Shown: positions 13,461 to 54,971, numbered from the stretch's first letter. The stretch is DNA of 64,000 nucleotides from IMGVR_UViG_3300032242_000723:248001-312000, one strand, 5' to 3'. Program-made: numbers and translations. The notes: a model not told the origin generated them from the sequence alone.

Positions 13461-16400
13461 ATGAATCTCAATGAACTCCATTCTTTCAAACTTGCAGATG
13501 CTATCAAGTTTCATACGGAACTTAATCCAAAACTTTGGAAAAATGACCAGTTAGATCCATTAGTTAGAAAGCAGTTATTGATTATTGCTGAGGACTTTGT
13601 TGAGGAGTTAGGAATACCTGATTTGGATATAGTTGATGTAACTATCTCAGGTTCTAACGCCGCATTTACCTGGACTAAACATAGCGATTTAGACCTTCAT
13701 ATCCTCGTAAATATGAGCGAGTTGCACCAAGACGCAATCTACCGCGAACTATTCAGAGCAAAGAAGACATTATATAATAGTAATCACGATATCACGGTGC
13801 ACGGCATCCCAGTTGAACTTTATGTTCAAGATTCAGCCGAACCTGTTGTATCGTTAGGTGAGTACAGTATCCTACATGATAAGTGGATCAAGGTCCCTGT
13901 TCGTAGAGCGGCCAAGTTAGATCAAAATGCTGCCAAAGCAAAGTTTGACCAACTTAAAGATTTGATTAGTGTTGCACTTAAGACTAAGCATAGCAAAAAG
14001 ATCAGTAAAGCCCTAGCATTAATCAAACGTTATCGCCAAGCTGGTCTTGACAAGGGCGGCGAGTTCAGTCCTGAGAACCTTGCCTTTAAGGCTGTTAGAT
14101 CGCAAGGTGCGATTGATGCACTATATGCAATGCGTGATAAGTTACACAGTGCAGAGTTAACGATTGAAGAAGGCTACGCTGGAGCCAAGATGAAGTTCTT
14201 GAAGCCAGGTGAATTGCGTGGATCGTACACGCCTGCTAAACTTACCGCATTAGGATTCAAGAAGTCACAGAACGGCTCATGGTTCATTCTACAATCTAAG
14301 TGGGAAGAGTTGCGTAAGACTGGTCAACTATATGAGACCGATGTTGTTGCAGAAAATCTCAGAAAAGAGTTTGAAGACTTTGATCCTGAAAACTTAGCTG
14401 AAGCACTTGACTCTACACCATATCCTTATGAAGAGATTTCGTCCACTCACCATAACTATATTGCTAGTAGAAGCCAATACATATTCACTACTGAAGATAA
14501 TCTGCCTTATGTAGCTATGATATTCAAATATCCAGGCAATAGAATCCGTATTGAGTTTAAGTCCACAAAGCAAACTCGTGATTTTCTTGGGTTCGAGGTG
14601 ACAGGTACAGGTGATGCCCGTAAGGTATTCGCTACTGTGATTGACATTGTGAAGAAGTATGTAGATAAGCATCATCCTGTTGAAATATCATTCTCAGCCA
14701 AAGAACCAAGCAGAGTCCGTTTATACGATGCGTTCTTGAAAAGACTGGATAGAGAGTTACCTGATTATGAAGGCAAATCGGGTCCAGGATACGAACCAGA
14801 TAATACATATTACCATCTCACTTTAAAAAATCAAAAGATAGACGAATCACTTGACTCACAACCATATCCTTATATTTCAACTATCGGCACAACAGGTGCA
14901 CATGAATATGCGTTCACTACGGATGACGATAACGAATATGAAGCCATAATCATTAATCAAAAATTTGGGATCCATGTATCTTTTTTTCTAAAACAAAAAC
15001 AACATAAAAATGGCCTAATCATAACCCGCACAGGTATAACGGGTACCGGCGATGCTCGTAGAGTGTTCGCTACTGTTATTGATATCGTGAAGAAATTCGC
15101 AGCAGCAGAGAAGCCTGAAGCCATAGTGTTTACTGCAAGTGAACCTAGCAGGATCCGTTTGTATGACGCATTCGTTAAAAGATTAGACAGAGAATTACCT
15201 GAGTATGCTGAGACTCGTAAAGAAAAAGGCATGGCAGAATGGTTCGTACTTCTACGCAAAACTAAGAAGATAGACGAAGCAACCGACCGTGACAGTGCGA
15301 TTAAGCAGATATTGAAGTTACAGAACACACAAGGTCGTTCACCAAGTGAGATAGAGGCATCAAAAGCTATCATCGCTAAAATGATGAAACGCTATAACAT
15401 TCATTCAAAAGAGTTGCTACCAGTTGAACGTAATCCATACCAAGATCGTATCAAACAAGCACGAGCCGAGCGTGATGTAGCAGGCGATATGCTAAAGGCA
15501 GAGTGGGATAGATTCAAAGGTGGGATCAAGGATAAGGTGTCTACTATCTTTAAAGAAGACTTAGACGAAGCACTTGATTCCCAACCATATCCATACGAGA
15601 TTGAAGAAGATAGCATAGCCTGGCAGATCAGCACCTTCACGACAAGTGACCGAAACCGTTATAAGGTTTGGGTAGTGAAATACAGTAATAAAGAAGTTTC
15701 GGTTGAATTCTCCTATCAAGGTAACGATGACATTGACACGAACTCAATGGAAATTGAAAACATAGGTGATGCCCGTAAGGTATTCGCTACTGTGATTGAG
15801 ATTGTAAAGAACTACGCTAAGAAGTATAAACCTAATAAGATTTCTTTTGACGCTGATCCAACTGAACCAAGCAGGATTCGTTTTTATAGTGCTCTTGTCA
15901 AGAGAGCAGACCGAATGTTGCCGGACTACGAAGATCAATCAATTGACTTCCTAGGTGACTTCAACCTTGTTAGAAAAGGTTATCAGTTTAACGAATCAAT
16001 AGTCTATCATGTGACCCCTACTAAAAATGTAAAGTCTATTATGCGTGACGGATTACGACCTCAAGTCGGCAACCGTTCGAGTAAGATTACAGGTGAAGAT
16101 AATGGTATCTTTGTCTTCAATAGCAAAAACGATGCAGAAGATGCTATAATGAACTGGCTCGGTGATGAGTTCGGTGAAGATGCTGAGTTAACCTTATTAG
16201 CAATCGATGCTGAAGGATTAGAACAGCATATGTCTACGGGTGCAGGATACGAAACAATCATGGATGTAGGGATCGAGCCTAGTCGTATTCGAGTAACTCA
16301 GGATATTCTTGAAGCATCTGGTTACATTCCAAGCAAGAAGGAAGCGAACGATCCTCGCTTCTCAACTGCGTTAACGGTAGATGTGAAACCTGATTCAATA

Positions 16401-41243: not shown

Positions 41244-42464
41244 ATGAACTACGATTTTCCGATTATCAATAACATCTCGGATGTGTTGCCAGCGATTGAA
41301 GGTCGTGACGAGTTCACGGTTGCTCAAAAGGACGGCTACACTGTCATCAACTATAATGTGATGTTTGAGGATACCTTTCCTCCCGTGAAAGTTACTGGAG
41401 GTTCTGCTAAGATGCGAGCCGAAAGGTCTCGTCATAACGTCCTGCGTCGTGAATGTCGCGGCATCATGTTTGACTCCGTGACTGGCGACATCATCCGTCG
41501 TCCTTTTCATAAGTTCTTTAATGTGAATGAAAGGGATGAAACTCAAGATAACACTATTGATATGTCTAAACCTCATGTTATCCTTGAGAAGCTGGACGGT
41601 AGCATGGTCGCTCCATTCTACGCGAATGATTTAATGCTATTTGGAACGAAGATGGGTGCTACTGATGTAGCGAAGCCTGTTGAAGCCTTTGTTAATGCAA
41701 ATCCAAAGTATATTGACTTTTCGCGAAACCAGATTGAAAATGGGTTTACTCCTATCTTTGAATGGTGCTCGCGTAAGCAGCGTATCGTTTTAGATTATCC
41801 TGAAGATCAGTTGATCTTGACTGGTCTCCGTCATCTTGAAACTGGTGAATATGTTTATTATGACGGTTTTGCTAGACTAGGAAAGGCTATGGATATCCCA
41901 GTTGTCCGTGCGTTTGACTCTCGTTCGGATATGAAGGAGTTCATTGAGTACACTCGTGATCTAGAAAACCTCGAGGGCTTTGTCGTTCGCTTTGACGATG
42001 GCCACATGCTAAAGTTAAAGTGTGAATGGTACCTTCAGATCCACCGTGCGAAGGAAGCGATTCTACAAGATCGTAACATCGTTGAGTTGATCCTTGACGA
42101 ACACTTGGATGATGTGAAGCCTCACCTGCTTCAGGAAGATCGTGATCGTATCAACAAGTTTGAGAATGATTTCAATCAAGCGATTATGAAAATATCAACT
42201 CACATCCTCGACAAGATAGTCAAAGATGTTCGTGGCTTGAAGATTTCTCGTAAGGACTTTGCTCTTGTCGTGTCTACTGTCGGTAACCAAAAAGGTGTCA
42301 ACTATATCGCTCCTATCATCTTTACTCTTTGGGATACTAATCCTATTGAGGTGAGTGATGTTGATGCACAGGTCCGCAAGATGGTACGCAAGTATCTGAA
42401 TAAGATTGCGAGGTACGAAGAGATTCGTGCTGCGTGGTTCCCTAATGTAATCTATAACATCTAA
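41244..42464 (+). CDS. rnlA: RNA ligase 1 (T4 RnlA-like)
   Basis: ECRG..FD, FHKFFN, EKLDGS (motif I), EGFVV (IV), LKLKCEWY (V). Confidence 0.88.
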   Translation: MNYDFPIINNISDVLPAIEGRDEFTVAQKDGYTVINYNVMFEDTFPPVKVTGGSAKMRAERSRHNVLRRECRGIMFDSVTGDIIRRPFHKFFNVNERDETQDNTIDMSKPHVILEKLDGSMVAPFYANDLMLFGTKMGATDVAKPVEAFVNANPKYIDFSRNQIENGFTPIFEWCSRKQRIVLDYPEDQLILTGLRHLETGEYVYYDGFARLGKAMDIPVVRAFDSRSDMKEFIEYTRDLENLEGFVVRFDDGHMLKLKCEWYLQIHRAKEAILQDRNIVELILDEHLDDVKPHLLQEDRDRINKFENDFNQAIMKISTHILDKIVKDVRGLKISRKDFALVVSTVGNQKGVNYIAPIIFTLWDTNPIEVSDVDAQVRKMVRKYLNKIARYEEIRAAWFPNVIYNI

Positions 42465-43908: not shown

Positions 43909-44940
43909 ATGAACAATAAAGAACATCTCCTTTACTTCTTTTTGCAAGGGACAATAAACCTTAGTCAATATGATTATAAGTTTATGTCTAACCTGCAAAC
44001 AATGATAAGCAATGATAGCAGAGTGACCTCTAACCAGGCAACATTGTTTGATAACCTTATCAGCAAATATCAAAAGCAGTTAGCTAAGGCTGGGTACGAT
44101 AAGCAAACGCTTAAGACATTACCTTGGAAAGCAACCATAGTCGAAAGCACGGCTGAACATACTAGTGCCAGAGTGTCATTGTTTGATAACGAACTTAAGA
44201 TCAGGGTACCGTTCAACAAATCCTTCATTGCTCATTTCAGAGAGAATGTAGTTGACAATCCTTTTACCTGGGACAAAGAGTCTAAGTACTATCGCGCCTA
44301 TTTTACGACAAACGCACTGAAGATCGCATCAAAGTCACTTCCTAAATATTTCCCCACAGTAACCTATCATGATGACCTCGTTGATATCGTGAATGAGTTA
44401 AAGAAATATGAGGCACCTGTATGGGATCCAATGTTGATCGACAACAACGGTCACTTAATGATCGCCGCTACAAATCCTATCGTGGATAATATCGTAAAGG
44501 ATATAAATCTTCAGTTAAATATGAAGACATTGCATACATTATCACGACATGGAATCAAAACTGATAATAAGATCACTGATACTGATCTTAAACTTAAGTT
44601 CGCAGCCGAGTATGTAACCGAAGTAGATTTGGACAACATGGAACAAGTGGCAGAATGGGTGAAGGAACTCGAATGTGATGGTGTGATATTAGGTAGAGGC
44701 ATCATATATGGTAAACCTTACGGACTAGGTGAGACGGCTACGATGAAAGAGATTATTACTACTAATCTAGCCAAACATGATGTGCCCTGTATTGCATCGC
44801 ACTCATCACAAGAAGGCGCGACTGTGGACCGTAACTATCTTTTAATGCAACTTACTAGCATGACAACTACGCCAGCATTTCCCAGCAATACTTCTAAGAT
44901 AATCATAGTGAAAAACTCCCGTCCCATAGAGGTCAAATGA
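43909..44940 (+). CDS. Hypothetical protein
   Basis: 343-aa ORF coupled to the helicase gene. Confidence 0.7.
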   Translation: MNNKEHLLYFFLQGTINLSQYDYKFMSNLQTMISNDSRVTSNQATLFDNLISKYQKQLAKAGYDKQTLKTLPWKATIVESTAEHTSARVSLFDNELKIRVPFNKSFIAHFRENVVDNPFTWDKESKYYRAYFTTNALKIASKSLPKYFPTVTYHDDLVDIVNELKKYEAPVWDPMLIDNNGHLMIAATNPIVDNIVKDINLQLNMKTLHTLSRHGIKTDNKITDTDLKLKFAAEYVTEVDLDNMEQVAEWVKELECDGVILGRGIIYGKPYGLGETATMKEIITTNLAKHDVPCIASHSSQEGATVDRNYLLMQLTSMTTTPAFPSNTSKIIIVKNSRPIEVK

Positions 44941-46385
44941 AACAAGCAAAAATAATAATCAAAGATGAAGTCAATGTAAAGATTGAGGGACTAGAACTCA
45001 ATATCCGCAAAGCGTTGACGAAAAAGTTTGAGTTTGAGAAGCCCGGTGCAAGATATCAGCCAGCAGTACGATTAGGTAGATGGAACGGTAAGGTCAGTTA
45101 TTTCTCATTAGGTGGTAGCACCTATATGAATCTACTAGACAAGATCATCCCTGTACTGATCGACTATGACTACGACATTGAGTTACAAGACCTTCGTGAA
45201 CCTAGCGAAGAGTTACAGTTTGAACGGGTGACAGAAGATACCTTTTCTGATATCAAATGGCCAAAAGGACATGAGCGTGAAGGGCAACCTGTTGTCTTGC
45301 GTGACTATCAGATAGAGATCGTAAACAACTTCCTAGAGAACCCTCAATCGCTTCAGGAAGTCGCTACAGGGGCGGGCAAGACTCTTATGACTGCTGCACT
45401 GTCTAAGAGTATAGAGCATCTAGGACGCTCTATAGTGATCGTTCCTAACACATCGTTGGTCGTTCAAACAGAAGCAGACTACATCAACTTAGGGCTTGAC
45501 GTGGGCGTATATTTCGGTGCCCGTAAAGAGTATGGAAAAACACATACGATCTGTACCTGGCAATCACTGAATATCTTATTGAAGAACACCGAAGAGGATA
45601 GCGAAGTAGTACCCAGTTTCTTTGAGGATGTCGTATGTGTTATCGTAGACGAGGTACATATGGCTAAGGCTGATGTTCTCAAGACGATGCTAACTGGTGT
45701 GCTATCTAATGTCCCTATTCGTTGGGGACTAACAGGTACGATCCCTAAAGCAGAGATGGATAAGACATCTATATTAGTATCATTGGGACCTGTTATAGGT
45801 AAGCTCTCAGCAAGCGAACTACAAGACAGAGGGGTATTAGCAACCTGTCATGTGAATATCATACAGTTGAAGGATAAGGTAGAGTTTATCAACTATCAAA
45901 GTGAACTCAAGCACCTATTAGAAAATGAATCTCGTCTTGATAAGATCGCAGAACTGATCGCGAATATTAACTTAACAGGTAATACTCTAGTATTAGTTGA
46001 CCGAGTGAATGCAGGTAAAGAACTTGCTAGTAGATTACCTAATGCAGTTTTTGTAAACGGCGGAACCAAACTTACAGAGAGAAAAGAAGAATATGACGAA
46101 GTTGCTACCAGCAATGATAAGGTTATCCTTGCCACCTATGGTGTGGCTGCTGTTGGTATTAACATCCCCCGTATTTTTAATTTGGTTCTCATTGAGCCCG
46201 GGAAAAGCTTTGTTCGTGTCATTCAATCGATTGGTCGTGGTATTAGAAAGGCCGAAGATAAAGACCATGTTCAAATCTGGGATATTACAAGCTCCTGTAA
46301 GTTCGCAAAGAGGCACCTAACACAACGGAAAGCATTCTATAAAGACGCAAACTACCCATTTACAATAGAGAAATTGGATTACTAA
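44937..46385 (+). CDS. uvsW: SF2 DNA helicase (UvsW-like)
   Basis: LRDYQ, ATGAGKT, IVDEVH, GLTGT, AVGINIPR, QSIGRGIR. Confidence 0.92.
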   Translation: MKQAKIIIKDEVNVKIEGLELNIRKALTKKFEFEKPGARYQPAVRLGRWNGKVSYFSLGGSTYMNLLDKIIPVLIDYDYDIELQDLREPSEELQFERVTEDTFSDIKWPKGHEREGQPVVLRDYQIEIVNNFLENPQSLQEVATGAGKTLMTAALSKSIEHLGRSIVIVPNTSLVVQTEADYINLGLDVGVYFGARKEYGKTHTICTWQSLNILLKNTEEDSEVVPSFFEDVVCVIVDEVHMAKADVLKTMLTGVLSNVPIRWGLTGTIPKAEMDKTSILVSLGPVIGKLSASELQDRGVLATCHVNIIQLKDKVEFINYQSELKHLLENESRLDKIAELIANINLTGNTLVLVDRVNAGKELASRLPNAVFVNGGTKLTERKEEYDEVATSNDKVILATYGVAAVGINIPRIFNLVLIEPGKSFVRVIQSIGRGIRKAEDKDHVQIWDITSSCKFAKRHLTQRKAFYKDANYPFTIEKLDY

Positions 46386-47382: not shown

Positions 47383-47969
47383 TGGCTAAAGAAAAGGTAC
47401 AAGCTGACGAGAAGTTTGAGAACCAAGACTTTGACTTGTTCCAAGCCCTCATTGCTATTGACAAGAAAGACTATGGTTACTACGATAGACTGACTGTTGA
47501 ACAGCAGAAGAAGTTTGTACCTTTCATGATGTTACATTGGGTCAGTGCAGTGAATGGTGGTAAAGATATTCAATCTTACTATCTTCAAAGCACTGATTAT
47601 CATGCGAACAAGTATCTGTTCAATGAGAATGTGCAAAAGCATCCCAAGTTACAGTGGCTAATGCTATGTTCAGCAAGTCCAGGTGTGGGGAAACAGTTCC
47701 ATCAGTGGATACCTCATATCAAGGACAAAGTGGCAAAACTACGAGAAAAGCCAAAGAATAAAGAGATCAAAGAATACTACAAGAAGATTTATCCTAGAGC
47801 GAGTGACAGTGACCTTACCCTATTGAGTGAGAGATATGTTGACCAACATCGCAAAAAGATGTATCTTGCTAATAAGTTTCCTACCCTGAAGTTTGATGAG
47901 ATTGAGACATTAAGTGGCATTATTACAGACCAAGACATTGAAGACTACGAACAAGACTGGGGCAACTGA
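47382..47969 (+). CDS. Replication-module protein (possibly clamp-loader small subunit-like)
   Basis: FDLFQALIAID...FVPFMM pattern and location; weak resemblance only. Confidence 0.4.
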   Translation: MAKEKVQADEKFENQDFDLFQALIAIDKKDYGYYDRLTVEQQKKFVPFMMLHWVSAVNGGKDIQSYYLQSTDYHANKYLFNENVQKHPKLQWLMLCSASPGVGKQFHQWIPHIKDKVAKLREKPKNKEIKEYYKKIYPRASDSDLTLLSERYVDQHRKKMYLANKFPTLKFDEIETLSGIITDQDIEDYEQDWGN

Positions 47970-48645
47970 ACCTAAGTTCGGTTGCGAGTTCTGTAATAGA
48001 TCGTTTCAGCGTGAGACATCTATTGCTACTCACCTCTGCGAAAACAAGCGTAGGTGGCAAGACAAAGACCAAGCAGGAAATCGTATTGGCTTCCAAGCTT
48101 GGTTAGAGTTCTACAAAAAGAACACCGCGACTAAGAAGGCTCGGACTTATCTTGACTTCACAAAGAGTGCATATTACCTAGCGTTTGTGAAGTTCGGTCA
48201 TTATTGTGTCAATGTAAATGTGTTGAATGTCAGCCGCTATGCTGATTGGCTACTCAAAAACTCAGTCAGTATTGACAACTGGTGCAGCGATACGACCTAC
48301 ACTAAGTTTATCATTGATCATCTCAAAACAGAAGATCCATTTGACGCGATTGCTCGTAGTATTGAGACAGCTATCACACATGCAAAGAATGAAGGTATAC
48401 AGAGTCACGATTACTTGCGTTATGGCAATCGTAATAAACTCTGTCATGTGATTACCACTGGTAAGATCAGTCCTTGGATGCTTTATCATAGCACGAGTGG
48501 TATTGAGATGATTGAAAGCCTGGACGAGATACATCAAAAGATGATCATAGATTATATCAATCCAGAACAATGGGCGATCAAGTTTGTGCGTAACGCAGAT
48601 ATCATTCCGCAGATCAAAGAACTATTATCCGCTGCAGGGTACTGA
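47914..48645 (+). CDS. C2H2-type Zn-finger protein
   Basis: CEFC..SF.....IATHLC. Confidence 0.65.
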   Translation: MALLQTKTLKTTNKTGATEPKFGCEFCNRSFQRETSIATHLCENKRRWQDKDQAGNRIGFQAWLEFYKKNTATKKARTYLDFTKSAYYLAFVKFGHYCVNVNVLNVSRYADWLLKNSVSIDNWCSDTTYTKFIIDHLKTEDPFDAIARSIETAITHAKNEGIQSHDYLRYGNRNKLCHVITTGKISPWMLYHSTSGIEMIESLDEIHQKMIIDYINPEQWAIKFVRNADIIPQIKELLSAAGY

Positions 48646-49283: not shown

Positions 49284-49835
49284 ATGGCACATGCAATCAT
49301 GATTGATATGGAAACGCTTGACACTGCTACGTCAACAGTTATCCTTACCATCGGCGCGGTATTGTTTGATCCAATGGGATCCGGTATTATCGAACAAATC
49401 GAACTTCGTCCTACTATGGATGAACAAACAGACGTATACAATCGTACAATCAGTGAAGACACTCTGCGTTGGTGGAGCGAACAAAGCCCTGACGCTATCA
49501 ACGAAGCAATGGGTGATCATGATCGTATCCCATATAAGGAATGTATGGAGAAACTTGCTAAGTTCTGCTGGAACAGAAAGGCTGTTTGGTCTAACGGTTC
49601 CGTCTTTGACATCATGATTGCAGAGTCGTCCTTCGCTGAACTTGACATCAAGACTCCTTGGCAGTTCTGGTCTATCCGCGATTGTCGTACTATATATGAA
49701 CTTGCAAATGTCAGCCTCAAAGACGGTGGACACGTGACCTCACACAAGGCAGTAGAAGATGCGGCTCATCAGGCTGCATGTGTTCAACGAGCATACAAGA
49801 AACTGTATGACGCAGGGTTTACGCACCTCAAATGA
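49284..49835 (+). CDS. DEDD 3'-5' exonuclease (RNase AS/DexA-like)
   Basis: MIDMETL, VWSNG..FD, RDCRT, HKAVEDA..QA. Confidence 0.85.
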   Translation: MAHAIMIDMETLDTATSTVILTIGAVLFDPMGSGIIEQIELRPTMDEQTDVYNRTISEDTLRWWSEQSPDAINEAMGDHDRIPYKECMEKLAKFCWNRKAVWSNGSVFDIMIAESSFAELDIKTPWQFWSIRDCRTIYELANVSLKDGGHVTSHKAVEDAAHQAACVQRAYKKLYDAGFTHLK

Positions 49836-50035
49836 CTAAGATTTATGAGTTTCCTCCTCAGCAACGGAAAACTGTTGAAACTTGGCTTACTGAGAACGTA
49901 AGCATAGAGGGGACTCGGTGGTGGACACATGGATTGAACGTGACTACTGAAGGACCATTGGTATATAAAGTTCACATTGATCTTACTGAAGAAGAAGAAT
50001 CTAAACTTACTTGGTTTATATTGGCAAATAAATGA
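49832..50035 (+). CDS. Small protein of the dispersed family
   Basis: ETWLTENV ... LTWFILANK. Confidence 0.55.
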   Translation: MTKIYEFPPQQRKTVETWLTENVSIEGTRWWTHGLNVTTEGPLVYKVHIDLTEEEESKLTWFILANK

Positions 50036-50613
50036 ACTTAGATGCAGATGTTGACATTGACGTAGGTGATCGGGATAAGGTTCTTAATCTTATCAAGCAT
50101 ATCCCTGCATCTATGCGTAACGTCACTCCTATCAGGAAGCATTCGTCTGGGGTTTATGTCACTGATATTCCCTATGATCCTGTTTATGATATGGCTACGA
50201 TTGATTATGCTGAAGCAGAACAACGCGGCTATTTCAAACTTGACTTGCTTAATGTTCATGTCTATAACTTGATCAAAGATGAAGAACATTTATTACGTAT
50301 GATGCAGGAACCAGATTGGTCTATGTTGAAAAAGCGTAGCATTGTTCTAGAGTTGATTCACCTCGGCAATCAGGCTGATTCTGTTAGTAGAATGCCAGAA
50401 CCAATCGACTCCATCCCTAGACTAGCAATGTTCCTAGCAGCGATCAGACCTGCAAAGAGACATCTGTTAGGTAAGTCTTGGAAAGAGATCAACGAAACTG
50501 TGTGGGATAAAGATCAAACTGGATACAGTTTCAAAAAGAGCCATGCTCTTGCCTATGCACAACTGGTAGTCGTCCACATGAACTTACTAAAAGAACAGGA
50601 AAACAAAGCATGA
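50032..50613 (+). CDS. DnaE (Pol III alpha, C-family) palm/fingers fragment
   Basis: DADVDID (cf. PDxDxD), KHSSGV (cf. HAxG), FKLDLL (cf. KxDxL), AAIRPA, YSFKKSHALAY (cf. FNKSH..AY). Confidence 0.8.
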   Translation: MNLDADVDIDVGDRDKVLNLIKHIPASMRNVTPIRKHSSGVYVTDIPYDPVYDMATIDYAEAEQRGYFKLDLLNVHVYNLIKDEEHLLRMMQEPDWSMLKKRSIVLELIHLGNQADSVSRMPEPIDSIPRLAMFLAAIRPAKRHLLGKSWKEINETVWDKDQTGYSFKKSHALAYAQLVVVHMNLLKEQENKA

Positions 50614-50825
50614 ATTGGATCAAGTGGCTCGGTACAACTGGGGTGATTGTAGCAACTATTCTTCGTGCATTAGGCTATCACGTTGAAGATATGGTGATCG
50701 GATTTCTAGGCACTGTGTTGTGGACATATGCAGCGTATAAAGATAAGGATATGGCACTGTTAACTTGTAACGTGTTTATCATAGCAGTATTGTCATATGG
50801 CATTTTAAAGGGATTTGGACACTAA
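50610..50825 (+). CDS. Three-TM small membrane protein
   Basis: Three hydrophobic helices in 71 aa. Confidence 0.65.
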   Translation: MNWIKWLGTTGVIVATILRALGYHVEDMVIGFLGTVLWTYAAYKDKDMALLTCNVFIIAVLSYGILKGFGH

Positions 50826-51349
50826 TGATTGGAAAAACAATGGAACTTAAACTACTCAAAGAAAACGATCCTAAACTACTTCAACCATCTACACCTTGGG
50901 ACTTTGATGTTGACGGTGATCCAACCGAACTCGTTAAGGAAATGGTGCGAGTACTAACTGAGAACGGCGGCGTTGGTCTTGCTGCGCCGCAATGCGGAAT
51001 CAATAAGACGATCTTTATCATGGGCAACTTCACGAAGATGGTAGTCTGTATCAATCCAAAGATCGTTTCTCTATCAGAGGGACGCACTACTGACACAGAA
51101 GGATGCTTGAGTTTCCCCGAACTTTGGCTAAAGGTTTCAAGAGCCGATAGTTGCTTTGTCAGTTATCAAAACACATCAGGTGAGTTGGTTGAAGATGAAC
51201 TTACAGGAATGATGGCTCGTGTTTATCTGCATGAGTTTGATCATCTATTGGGGATCACGTTTGATCAACGAGTTGGTGAAATGAAGTTGAAGATGGCTAA
51301 GGAAACAAGAGTTAAAGACTTGAAGAAGAAGTCTAGGGCATCCGCTTAA
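50825..51349 (+). CDS. def: Peptide deformylase
   Basis: GVGLAAPQ, EGCLS, HEFDHLLG; basic C-terminal helix. Confidence 0.96.
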   Translation: MIGKTMELKLLKENDPKLLQPSTPWDFDVDGDPTELVKEMVRVLTENGGVGLAAPQCGINKTIFIMGNFTKMVVCINPKIVSLSEGRTTDTEGCLSFPELWLKVSRADSCFVSYQNTSGELVEDELTGMMARVYLHEFDHLLGITFDQRVGEMKLKMAKETRVKDLKKKSRASA

Positions 51350-51713
51350 CAAGCGTAATACTCCTACGCTTAGCACGTTTCTTAGCAAAGTCTGTCATAC
51401 TAACAACAGGACCGTGTAAAATCTCTAGGCTCTTATTGTTGAATGTTCTAATATAGGGCTTGAAGATGGACCAATCATCTTTCAGGAAAAGGTTAATGGG
51501 AATCGTTCTATTTGATTCCCACCACCATATGTCTCCTAGTTCTAAAAACTTAGCCTTAAGATCGGCTGTTAATATTGACCCGTAATCGTACATGGTTGTT
51601 ACCATGTCGTCGCGATTCTGGATGATACCTACAAAGTCTTGTGAGGCATAGGAACAGACCGTGATAAACGGGTGATTATTACTCAGTTTGATGAAAAAAT
51701 CGTTTGCGTCCAT
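51333..51713 (-). CDS. Hypothetical protein (tail-to-tail overlap with def)
   Basis: 126-aa ORF with upstream TAAATA; fills an otherwise empty interval. Confidence 0.7.
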   Translation of the reverse strand: MDANDFFIKLSNNHPFITVCSYASQDFVGIIQNRDDMVTTMYDYGSILTADLKAKFLELGDIWWWESNRTIPINLFLKDDWSIFKPYIRTFNNKSLEILHGPVVSMTDFAKKRAKRRSITLVKRMP

Positions 51714-52606: not shown

Positions 52607-53581
52607 ATGTTTGATATCCTAAATGTAATAACAGGAAAGAAAAAGCGTACACAAGGCGGCTGGTATAGCTTCAACGCACCTTGTTGTCATAATCGCGGAC
52701 ATAAAGTTGACAAGAGAATGCGTGGCGGTATCAAGCATGACGGTGACAACAACTGGTCGTACAACTGTTTCAACTGTAACTTCAAGTGCGGATTTGTATT
52801 AGGCAAGCAACTTAGTGCGAACACTAAGCAGTTGCTACGCTGGATGGGCGTAGAAGACAGTCAGATCACTAAGTGGAACCTAGAAAGTCTACAGCAAAAA
52901 GATTTGATTGAATATGTGACATCTAAGAAACAACGATCACATATTAGATTTGAAGAAGTTACATTACCTGATGCTGAAATGCTTGACAGTAACAATATAA
53001 AGCACAAATACTTTACTGACTATGTGAATAGCAGAGGATTTAAGACAACTGATTATCCTTTCATGGTCACTCCTGATGATGAGGGGCGAAACGCAAATCG
53101 TATTATCATTCCCTATACATATAAGAACAAGATCGTAGGACACACAAGTCGTTATCTTGACAATCGTATCCCCAAGTTCATCAAAGAACAACAGCCAGGA
53201 TATGTGTTTGGTTATGATTTTCAGAAGCCAAACTGGGAAGTATGTATCGTAGTCGAAGGCATATTTGATGCACTATCGTTAGATGCTATTGCACTGACAC
53301 ACGATACGATCAGCGACGAACAGGCTATCTTGATACGCTCACTCAATAGACGAGTCATCGTTGTTCCTGATATGGATAAGACAGGCTTAACGATATGCGA
53401 ACGAGCATTAGAGTTGGGCTTTCAAGTATCGATCCCAGATTGGGGACCTGATGTAAAGGATGTCAACGATGCTGTAGTTAAATATGGCAAGTTGGCGACA
53501 TTACTAAGTATACTACAAAACGCAACGAACAGTAAGATTAAGATAGAGATGAATAGGAAACGCATTGCTAAAAGAGTATAA
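52607..53581 (+). CDS. DNA primase (DnaG/gp61-like)
   Basis: Zn motif PCCH...CFNC; TOPRIM VVEGIFDA, VPDMD, KDVND. Confidence 0.9.
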   Translation: MFDILNVITGKKKRTQGGWYSFNAPCCHNRGHKVDKRMRGGIKHDGDNNWSYNCFNCNFKCGFVLGKQLSANTKQLLRWMGVEDSQITKWNLESLQQKDLIEYVTSKKQRSHIRFEEVTLPDAEMLDSNNIKHKYFTDYVNSRGFKTTDYPFMVTPDDEGRNANRIIIPYTYKNKIVGHTSRYLDNRIPKFIKEQQPGYVFGYDFQKPNWEVCIVVEGIFDALSLDAIALTHDTISDEQAILIRSLNRRVIVVPDMDKTGLTICERALELGFQVSIPDWGPDVKDVNDAVVKYGKLATLLSILQNATNSKIKIEMNRKRIAKRV

Positions 53582-54971
53582 TACAGACGTTCAAACATTA
53601 TTCTTGAGAATGATGGTAACTAATGCCGAGTTGTATACTCGCGTCATGAATATCATGAATGCTGAGAACTTTGATCGTAAGTTACGTCCAGTTGCGGAGT
53701 TCATGGTTGAGCACTCTACGAAGTATAGCATCATGCCTGATCCATTGCAGATCAAGGCAACAACTGGTGAAGATATTGAACCTATCCCTGAACTCACTGA
53801 GGGTCACTTTGATTGGTTCTTAGAAGAGTTTGAATCATTCACAAAGCGTCAAGAACTTGAAAGAGCGATCCTCAAAGCAGCAGACATGCTTGAGAAAGGT
53901 GAGTTTGACCCTGTTGAAAAACTGATCAAGGACGCGGTTCAGATCAGTCTACAGCGTGACATGGGTACAGATTACTTTGCGAATCCTACAAATCGTATCA
54001 ACAAGTATTTCAACGCAGGTGGACAGGTCAGCACTGGCTGGCCTCAGATGGATCGTCTATTGTATGGCGGATTTAGTCGCGGCGAGTTGAACATCTTTGC
54101 TGGTGGTTCTGGCTCTGGTAAGTCTCTTGTCATGATGAACATCGCACTCAACTGGTTACAACAAGGCATGAGCGGTGTCTATATCAGTCTTGAACTCTCA
54201 GAAGAGTTAACCTCATTGCGAACAGATGCGATGTTGACTAGCATGAGCACGAGAGACATTCGTAAGGACATTGAAACGACTGGATTAAAGGTCGTGATGA
54301 TGGGTAAGAAGTCTGGTAAGTATCGTGTTAAGGGCTTACCGGCACAAAGCACAGTGAACGACATTCGCAGCTATCTCAAAGAAGTTCAGATCCAAACTGG
54401 AATCAAAGTGGACTTCGTGATGATTGACTATCTTGATCTGGTGATGCCTGTATCAGTCAAGGTCAATCCTAACGATCAGTTTATCAAGGACAAGTATGTG
54501 TCTGAAGAACTACGTAACCTGGCAAAGGAACTTGGTGTTCTAATGGTAACTGCATCTCAGCTAAATCGTTCGGCTGTTGAAGAGATTGAGTTTGATCACA
54601 GTCACATTGCAGGTGGTATTTCAAAGATCAATACTGCTGACAATGTATTCGGTATCTTTACTTCACGATCAATGCGTGAGCGTGGCAAGTATCAGATTCA
54701 GTGTATGAAGTCTCGTTCATCTACTGGTGTTGGACAAAAGATTGACCTAGAGTATAATATTGAGACGATGCGTATTACAGATGAAGATCCAGAAGGTGAT
54801 AGTAAACCACAACCTAGTGCAAGTCAGATCATGAGTCAGATCAAGAATACTAGTACTGTGGGTACAATAAACGATGCTGTTCACAACACTATGGGAACAG
54901 ATGAAAAAAGAGTTGTTCCAGATGTACAGAGTGCAAAATTAAAGGCAATGCTTAACTCACTAAAGAAATAG
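53565..54971 (+). CDS. Replicative helicase (DnaB/gp41-like)
   Basis: AGGSGSGKS, SLELSEE, IDYLDL, ASQLNR, KSRSS; TTG start. Confidence 0.93.
   Translation: MLKEYNTDVQTLFLRMMVTNAELYTRVMNIMNAENFDRKLRPVAEFMVEHSTKYSIMPDPLQIKATTGEDIEPIPELTEGHFDWFLEEFESFTKRQELERAILKAADMLEKGEFDPVEKLIKDAVQISLQRDMGTDYFANPTNRINKYFNAGGQVSTGWPQMDRLLYGGFSRGELNIFAGGSGSGKSLVMMNIALNWLQQGMSGVYISLELSEELTSLRTDAMLTSMSTRDIRKDIETTGLKVVMMGKKSGKYRVKGLPAQSTVNDIRSYLKEVQIQTGIKVDFVMIDYLDLVMPVSVKVNPNDQFIKDKYVSEELRNLAKELGVLMVTASQLNRSAVEEIEFDHSHIAGGISKINTADNVFGIFTSRSMRERGKYQIQCMKSRSSTGVGQKIDLEYNIETMRITDEDPEGDSKPQPSASQIMSQIKNTSTVGTINDAVHNTMGTDEKRVVPDVQSAKLKAMLNSLKK

Follow-up and report, generated by a model that had tools for sequence, protein, structure and literature searches.

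The ORF at positions 50032..50613 (+ strand, 193 aa) of the window, i.e. the whole stretch of 64,000 nucleotides that we analysed, encodes the C-terminal, Mg2+- and template-binding half of a minimal, split DnaE-like Pol III alpha (hereafter the C-half). Its counterpart, the N-half, is a 169-aa ORF that sits ~51 kb from it when the distance is counted across the ends of the record. The best explanation for these data, which we regard as highly probable, is that the two genes encode a split minimal C-family enzyme with a composite active site held together non-covalently. In such a Pol III alpha / DnaE-like nucleotidyltransferase, the C-half, as the C-terminal part, would give the metal-binding residues D6, D8 and D71, with K69 by the third aspartate, and also a trimmed finger core made of R139-P140 and K168/K169-S-H171...Y175. 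The N-half would give a helix-loop with the GRGS phosphate-binding motif. The split point would thus fall inside the polymerase-beta-like palm, between GRGS...EFLK and the DxDxD strand. Neither half is expected to be active by itself, and the two would have to join, without the help of an intein, into one site.

The C-terminal half

The window spans bases 248001-312000 (G+C 41%) of the record IMGVR_UViG_3300032242_000723, a jumbo phage of 333,115 bp with a CheckV completeness of 92%. A search of metagenome runs found its DNA mostly in freshwater metagenomes (DNA runs). Megablast of 3 kb revealed no near relative among cultured phages at the DNA level, and the identity of this member to cultured phages is at most 48%. 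The gene of the C-half, at 298032-298613 in genome coordinates, is preceded immediately 5' of its ATG by an in-frame TAA (50029-50031). Hence the protein starts no earlier than M-N-L-D-A-D-V-D-I-D and the ORF does open at the catalytic DxDxD, as had been claimed from the sequence. Both of its junctions are ATGA overlaps: at 50032-50035 the start of the C-half overlaps the stop of a 67-aa ORF on the 5' side, and at 50610-50613 its stop overlaps the start of a 71-aa ORF on the 3' side. The coupling to both neighbours that had been noticed earlier is therefore real. The PHROGs profiles assign the C-half to phrog_11778, a family of 197 positions annotated as 'DNA polymerase' (E 5.4e-56), and give weak matches between its C-terminus and long DnaE-type families. 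A Pfam scan of the ORF returned no family.

From a search of 1.84 billion cluster representatives we drew and aligned 85 homologues of the C-half whose identity is 30-77%. D6, D8, K69, D71 and P140 are present in 85/85 of them, which means that the three catalytic aspartates of the C-family core (D6, D8 and D71) are all there and invariant. D10, H37 and R139 are each found in 84/85 homologues, as is H171; G40 is found in 83/85 and K168 in 79/85, and K142 is also near-invariant. These are exactly the motifs that the original prediction had listed, in DnaE order. Their correspondence with E. coli DnaE is based on evidence of several kinds. Using hhalign, K69/D71 match K553/D555 and R139-P140 match R639-P640 (E 1.3e-5), and the stretch F167..Y175 matches F756..Y765 (E 6.1e-5). 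D6/D8/D10 and H37..G40 were equated with D401/D403/D405 and H511..G514, respectively, by motif position and whole-length structural match only. The first 20 residues of the C-half gave no significant hhalign match to E. coli 393-445 (probability 2.9%), and the DxDxD...RD pattern can be aligned by eye between these segments. Since hhalign proposes two competing finger placements for residues 93-142, we anchored the mapping at R-P and KSH and otherwise relied on structural superposition. An HMM built from close homologues of the C-half produced chance matches only against PDB sequences.

The motifs are close together, as previously remarked. D10 and H37 are separated by 27 residues in the C-half, whereas 106 separate D405 from H511 in E. 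coli. Hence, the thumb (E. coli ~433-510) is absent from the C-half. Likewise, R139 and K169 are separated by 30 residues in the C-half and by 119 in E. coli, showing that its fingers are trimmed.

The AlphaFold2 model of the C-half, computed from the 85-sequence alignment, has a pLDDT of 96 and a pTM of 0.89. When this model was searched against the PDB with Foldseek, the best 14 matches were all C-family polymerases, with modest E-values (0.015-0.15). VIA-align placed DnaE or PolC in all of its top 12 entries, with Z of 6.4-9.7 and 170-189 of the 193 residues aligned. The highest Z, 9.7 (189/193 residues), compares with 3.8 for the best unrelated chain. The matched structures, which cover the C-half from end to end, are the DnaE proteins of Taq, E. 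coli and M. tuberculosis, and PolC. Residues 1-193 of the model span E. coli 397-784, Taq 458-841 and PolC 968-1299. The comparison of models thus agrees with the proposed fold: the C-half is a DnaE palm plus a finger core.

DnaE is normally longer than 1000 aa. The small size of the ORF and the absence of a Pfam domain could thus be taken as signs that it is a decaying, non-functional fragment of a full-length dnaE captured from a host. Yet its dN/dS is 0.070 relative to the two nearest relatives and 0.115 relative to the next, with a median of 0.088 over the 215 pairs with unsaturated dS. An intact ORF of 188-206 aa was present in all of the 80 IMG/VR relatives fetched. The length and boundaries of the ORF are constant across thousands of clusters: at 90% identity there are at least 7,895 clusters of the C-half and at least 8,000 of the N-half, and nearly all those listed have the split length. 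Invariant catalytic residues, the high pLDDT of the model, the translational coupling to both neighbours and the conservation of the partner half in the same genomes all argue in the same direction. The C-half is a real and intact ORF under strong purifying selection (dN/dS about 0.07-0.12). This was one of the checks that the original prediction had called for, and it excludes decay. Given these ratios and the intact ORFs of the relatives, we rejected the pseudogene interpretation, to which we attach a negligible probability.

The N-terminal half and the pairing

Searching the whole genome with the Pfam profile DNA_pol3_alpha (PF07733) gave one match, at 15876-16109 in genome coordinates. It lies inside the ORF of 169 aa at genome 15600-16109 (+ strand, outside the window), which encodes the N-terminal, NTP-binding half and belongs to phrog_11127, annotated as 'DNA polymerase'. 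The match covers residues 93-168 with 37.7 bits (cut-off 23.9) and an E-value of 2.3e-9. The protein ends in ...GVGRGSS...DEFLK, followed by the stop codon. Another subunit, encoded elsewhere and ending near GRGS...FL, had been anticipated from the C-half, and this ORF corresponds to it. The N-half aligns to E. coli DnaE 348-392 and to Taq 406-454, i.e. to the GRGS...FERFL segment, which places the break between FERFL and the DxDxD strand. The phosphate-binding GRGS loop, missing from the C-half, is present in the N-half, where G137-R138-G139-S140 are invariant in 33 sequences. EFLK ends 32 of the 33 aligned homologues and EFIK the remaining one, and the N-half has thousands of homologues of equal length. 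Its HMM gave only marginal matches to the DnaE chains of the PDB (E about 0.1). Opposite R390, the second arginine of the E. coli FERFL motif, the N-half has an invariant Glu, and its way of binding the nucleotide may therefore differ from that of DnaE.

The first ~90 residues of the N-half fall outside the PF07733 match. Within them, residues 46-92 align to phrog_405, a long DnaE-type family, and the N-terminal stretch has a sub-threshold match to DUF7438 (23.6 bits for a cut-off of 25). Residues 3-31 take part in the predicted interface described below, although the equivalent part of the fused model is of low confidence.

No intein segments occur at the break: EFLK closes the N-half, and in the C-half only five residues precede the first catalytic Asp. 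We considered intein-mediated splicing and rejected it, since an intein would not fit there and a natural fusion of the two halves needs only a 10-residue linker. Without an intein, the assembly of the halves must be non-covalent.

These natural fusions are rare, three clusters against thousands of split ones among the matches listed. In P0287, P0391 and P0392 (375-376 aa), the N-half is followed by the linker and then by the C-half, in DnaE order. The junction passes from ...EFIK to DFDID via the 10 residues of the linker, and the PF07733 match runs across it (E 4.8e-16). The fusions confirm the colinearity of the two halves. In a quick tree, with SH-aLRT support and a midpoint root used for drawing only, the three fused forms are nested in a clade of split forms with 95% support. 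Their position in this quick midpoint-rooted tree fits a secondary fusion of split forms.

The model of the fused form has a pLDDT of 84 and matches 16 C-family polymerase entries with Z of 13.8-21.8, the next chain having a Z of 4.6. Its residues 74-375 correspond to E. coli 272-773, with ~288 residues aligned at 3.0-3.6 A, and Foldseek also retrieves C-family polymerases (E 7e-9, probability 1.00). Polymerase-beta-fold nucleotidyltransferases trail behind the C-family matches (Z at most 4.6). One might nevertheless speculate that the pair is one of these, a non-templated enzyme working as a terminal transferase, in nucleotide tailing or as a maker of a small nucleotide product for phage-host conflict. 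What remains of the protein is barely more than a nucleotidyltransferase core, the DNA-gripping parts of DnaE are gone, and structural similarity extends next to ANT(2''), MenT, CCA-adding enzymes, Cid1 and cGAS-like proteins. But this is at odds with the C-family finger motifs R-P and F-x-K-S-H..A-Y, near-invariant across the 85 sequences, with the gap between Z of 14-22 to DnaE/PolC and of 4.6 or less to other nucleotidyltransferases, and with the location of the genes among replisome genes and not among defence or counter-defence genes. We thus find a non-templated function improbable. Because the palm is complete and the finger motifs are near-invariant, a template-dependent polymerase is favoured over a generic nucleotidyltransferase.

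We also predicted the complex between the N-half and the C-half of this genome. Its score is 0.89, and that of the best control is 0.26. The halves are thus predicted to bind, in line with the original prediction. The mark of 0.89 is attained by 58/80 solved complexes and by 2/110 mismatched pairs, a benchmark that is only roughly applicable because custom alignments were used for the complex prediction. The predicted interface involves residues 130-143 (the GRGS loop) and 166-169 of the N-half, and residues 4-12, 65-68 and 168-171 of the C-half. In this model the GRGS loop and the C-terminus of the N-half would be in contact with the DxDxD strand, the K69 region and the KSH motif. The score may partly reflect the memory that the model has of intact DnaE structures; the predicted complex supports the binding of the halves without showing it.

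The two halves also occur in the same phages. By tblastn, 96 phage records contain the C-half and 92 contain the N-half, and the jumbo-phage genera concerned are the same. They include the PA5oct group, Rak2/K64-1, GAP32, 121Q/PBECO4, CBB and Atu_ph07, and further phages are Phosso, SCTP-2, XacN1 and Vibrio 2.275.O. Several of the GenBank records name the halves 'DnaE-like DNA polymerase III alpha'. Among relatives' contigs at least 76% complete, the N-half was found in 3/3, at 40-45 kb from the C-half. The halves are 34-45 kb apart in Paride, PA5oct, GAP32 and three IMG/VR genomes.

Gene neighbourhoods and role

The upstream edge of the replication block is marked in the window by a gene for a UvsW-like helicase (44937..46385, +; ResIII and Helicase_C; phrog_16, E 7e-75), in which the match to UvsW_N is weak (E 6.6e-5, 23.7 bits, under the 25.3 cut-off). 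A helicase occupies the equivalent relative position in GAP32 and Paride. Upstream of this block we observed a T4 Rnl1-type RNA ligase at 41244-42464 (+; PF09511, E 1.4e-30, plus T4_Rnl1_C). In Phosso, Paride (PA5oct-like) and GAP32, the gene order starts with a 195-aa ORF, a 243-aa ORF of phrog_11058 and the C-half. It continues with a convergent ORF of ~120 aa (phrog_11637), a virion protein, the primase and the DnaB-like helicase. In the window, the ORF of phrog_11058 (47914..48645, +; 243 aa, E 3e-58) carries a C2H2-like Cys/His motif; according to tblastn, its homologue in Phosso, Paride and GAP32 directly precedes the C-half. The convergent downstream neighbour has 125 aa here (51333..51713, -; phrog_11637, E 7.5e-32) and is found on the opposite strand in 67/80 close relatives as well as in Phosso, Paride and GAP32. 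A Toprim DNA primase (52607..53581, +; phrog_47, E 1.2e-34; Toprim_2) follows ~2 kb downstream of the C-half, in the same order as in these three phages, and then comes a DnaB-like replicative helicase of the T4 gp41 type (53565..54971, +; PF03796, E 3.3e-21; phrog_19, E 2.1e-72). The ORFs of phrog_11058 and phrog_11637 thus flank the C-half across jumbo phages of Sinorhizobium, Pseudomonas and Cronobacter, and are candidates for further subunits or regulators.

The subclade of the window has genes inserted in this order, an exonuclease upstream and a small membrane protein and a peptide deformylase downstream. The exonuclease is an Rv2179c-like 3'-5' enzyme of 183 aa (49284..49835, +; PF16473, E 4.6e-33), one small ORF upstream of the C-half. 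It is upstream of the C-half in 77/80 close IMG/VR relatives and was not found around the C-half gene at the loci of Phosso, Paride and GAP32. We therefore rejected it as a universal partner, the adjacency being limited to this subclade. Proofreading for a polymerase that has neither PHP nor epsilon is a possible function of this enzyme, although distant relatives do not keep the two genes adjacent. The peptide deformylase (50825-51349, +; PF01327, E 4.7e-38) lies between the C-half and the conserved convergent ORF. It is near the C-half in 59/80 close relatives, but the annotations of Phosso, Paride and GAP32 show no such gene around the C-half.

The N-half has a conserved context of its own. 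In Paride and GAP32, two to three small ORFs separate it from the clamp loader, which is downstream. The run from the N-half to the apparent clamp-loader gene is the same in this genome except for one inserted HNH gene. We identified this apparent clamp-loader gene (genome 17970-18959) by visual inspection, using its WVEKYRP motif and the synteny with Paride and GAP32. By eye, there are three HNH-type homing endonuclease-like ORFs near the N-half (genome 12558-13277, -; 17010-17630, +; and 20480-21247, -). Two of them open with MCIYCGTTK, the motif H-H-(I/V)-D-G is common to all three, and one of them is the gene that breaks the otherwise conserved run.

Is this enzyme the replicase of the phage? 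The halves lie in replication blocks, by the primase-helicase genes and by the clamp loader, and they are conserved like core genes across the clade. One could thus imagine that the heterodimer is the main replicative polymerase and that the B-family enzyme has another role. However, a search for a polymerase of the gp43 type, which the original prediction had suggested, found an intact B-family polymerase of 904 aa with exonuclease and polymerase domains (genome 46076-48790). According to PMC7824862, such an enzyme is the conserved T4-type replicase of the group. Furthermore, the mini enzyme has no thumb, HhH, clamp-binding motif, proofreading or PHP domain. We consider it very unlikely that the heterodimer is the main replicase. 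As a side observation, the Pfam polymerase match of the B-family enzyme is stretched (residues 339-624 for 222 profile positions) and a weak, sub-threshold NUMOD4 match is found at 491-540, so its polymerase domain may carry an insertion.

Domains of a full-length DnaE were also looked for in the whole genome. PHP (PF02811) was not found in the 333-kb genome, in a search whose control was positive in 14/14 genomes, and neither were DNA_pol3_finger (PF17657) and HHH_6 (PF14579). The HhH module, the clamp-binding motif, the OB fold and the tau-binding C-terminus are beyond the C-half, whose model ends at ~784 of E. coli. The lack of PHP and HhH/OB domains had thus been read correctly. The original prediction had, more broadly, proposed a split, minimal replicase. 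The split and the partner are borne out by our results; the word replicase is not, given the presence of the 904-aa B-family polymerase and the missing processivity parts.

With an intact B-family polymerase in the genome and without the PHP, finger and HhH domains, the split enzyme is probably accessory. The lack of the thumb, HhH, clamp-binding and OB parts that confer processivity makes this role likelier still. Stable primer-template binding is not assured when the thumb, HhH, clamp-binding motif and PHP are missing, and an enzyme lacking the first three should grip DNA weakly. On balance, we lean slightly towards a heterodimer that acts as a low-processivity template-dependent DNA polymerase beside the B-family polymerase. 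Its jobs might include lagging-strand primer extension, repair and gap filling. From the replisome context we infer an accessory role in primer extension, on the lagging strand or in repair.

Relation to known systems

A split minimal polymerase might have seemed to be new. Yet, the split mini Pol III alpha of jumbo phages has already been known, by computation, since 2021: Iyer, Anantharaman, Krishnan, Burroughs and Aravind (Viruses 13:63, PMC7824862) describe it in group 2.2 jumbo phages. There, an N-terminal NTP-binding protein and a C-terminal Mg2+- and template-binding protein are encoded by distant genes, other Pol III domains are absent, and the split enzyme accompanies a B-family polymerase with which, in the authors' suggestion, it may cooperate in the synthesis of one strand or in repair. 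Earlier still, a Pol III alpha fragment had been annotated in Atu_ph07 (Attai et al. 2018, PMC6102473). Our system consists of the same two distant genes, phrog_11778 for the C-half and phrog_11127 for the N-half, beside a B-family polymerase, with homologues common to PA5oct, Rak2, GAP32, 121Q, Atu_ph07 and SCTP-2. The genes of a T4-type replisome are here too: the primase, the DnaB-like and UvsW-like helicases and the apparent clamp loader. Hence there is no difference of substance, except that ours comes from freshwater metagenomes, has at most 48% identity to cultured phages and carries the clade-specific insertions of exonuclease, small membrane protein and peptide deformylase. We add one more member, together with fold models, a predicted heterodimer, natural fusions, measurements of selection and estimates of metagenomic abundance, and none of these last five was found in the passages of PMC7824862 that we consulted. 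Our literature search found no biochemical work on the split enzyme, and the PA5oct omics paper does not mention the genes of the halves by name. The family abounds in metagenomes, from freshwater and elsewhere, with thousands of clusters. Since it occurs in the jumbo phages PA5oct, Rak2 and 121Q, which are therapeutic candidates, culturable test systems exist.

Compared with bacterial DnaE (E. coli 2HNH and 5FKW; Taq 2HPI and 3E0D; M. tuberculosis 5LEW and 7PU7) and PolC (3F2B), the mini enzyme has the same polymerase-beta-like palm and the same motifs in the same order, i.e. GRGS, DxD, KxD, R-P and F-N-K-S-H..A-Y. It has ~360 aa in two chains, whereas DnaE has 1000-1400 aa in one, and it lacks the PHP, the thumb, the distal fingers/HhH, the beta-clamp motif, the OB fold and the tau-binding domain, and has R390 replaced. 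If the pair is active, it would define how small a catalytic unit can be in the family of bacterial replicative polymerases, and provide an example of an active site assembled from two polypeptides. Activity would also bear on how Pol III evolved out of a nucleotidyltransferase with a polymerase-beta-like fold, and on the reasons for which a T4-type replisome retains another polymerase, unrelated to its first.

Cyanobacterial DnaE is also split, but far downstream in the full-length protein, and its halves are ligated by intein trans-splicing. The two systems share a C-family polymerase made from two distant genes. In the phage, the 169 + 193 residues amount to the polymerase segments plus a short N-terminal extension.

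Replisomes with two polymerases are found in other systems, such as DnaE and PolC in B. subtilis, and Pol alpha and delta/epsilon in eukaryotes. By functional analogy only, a less processive second polymerase could extend primers and then hand over. We would propose, quite tentatively, that the pair is the smallest known active C-family polymerase, that its two chains, ~360 residues in all, build the active site across their interface, and that it serves as a dedicated polymerase for primer extension, or for the lagging strand and repair, which hands over to the B-family replicase. If such a handover takes place, these phages would have a mixed two-polymerase replisome, of bacterial type and of archaeo-eukaryotic type, and they would offer a working model of an ancestral Pol III core without PHP, thumb, HhH and OB. 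The gene of the C-half lies, in this respect, just upstream of the primase gene.
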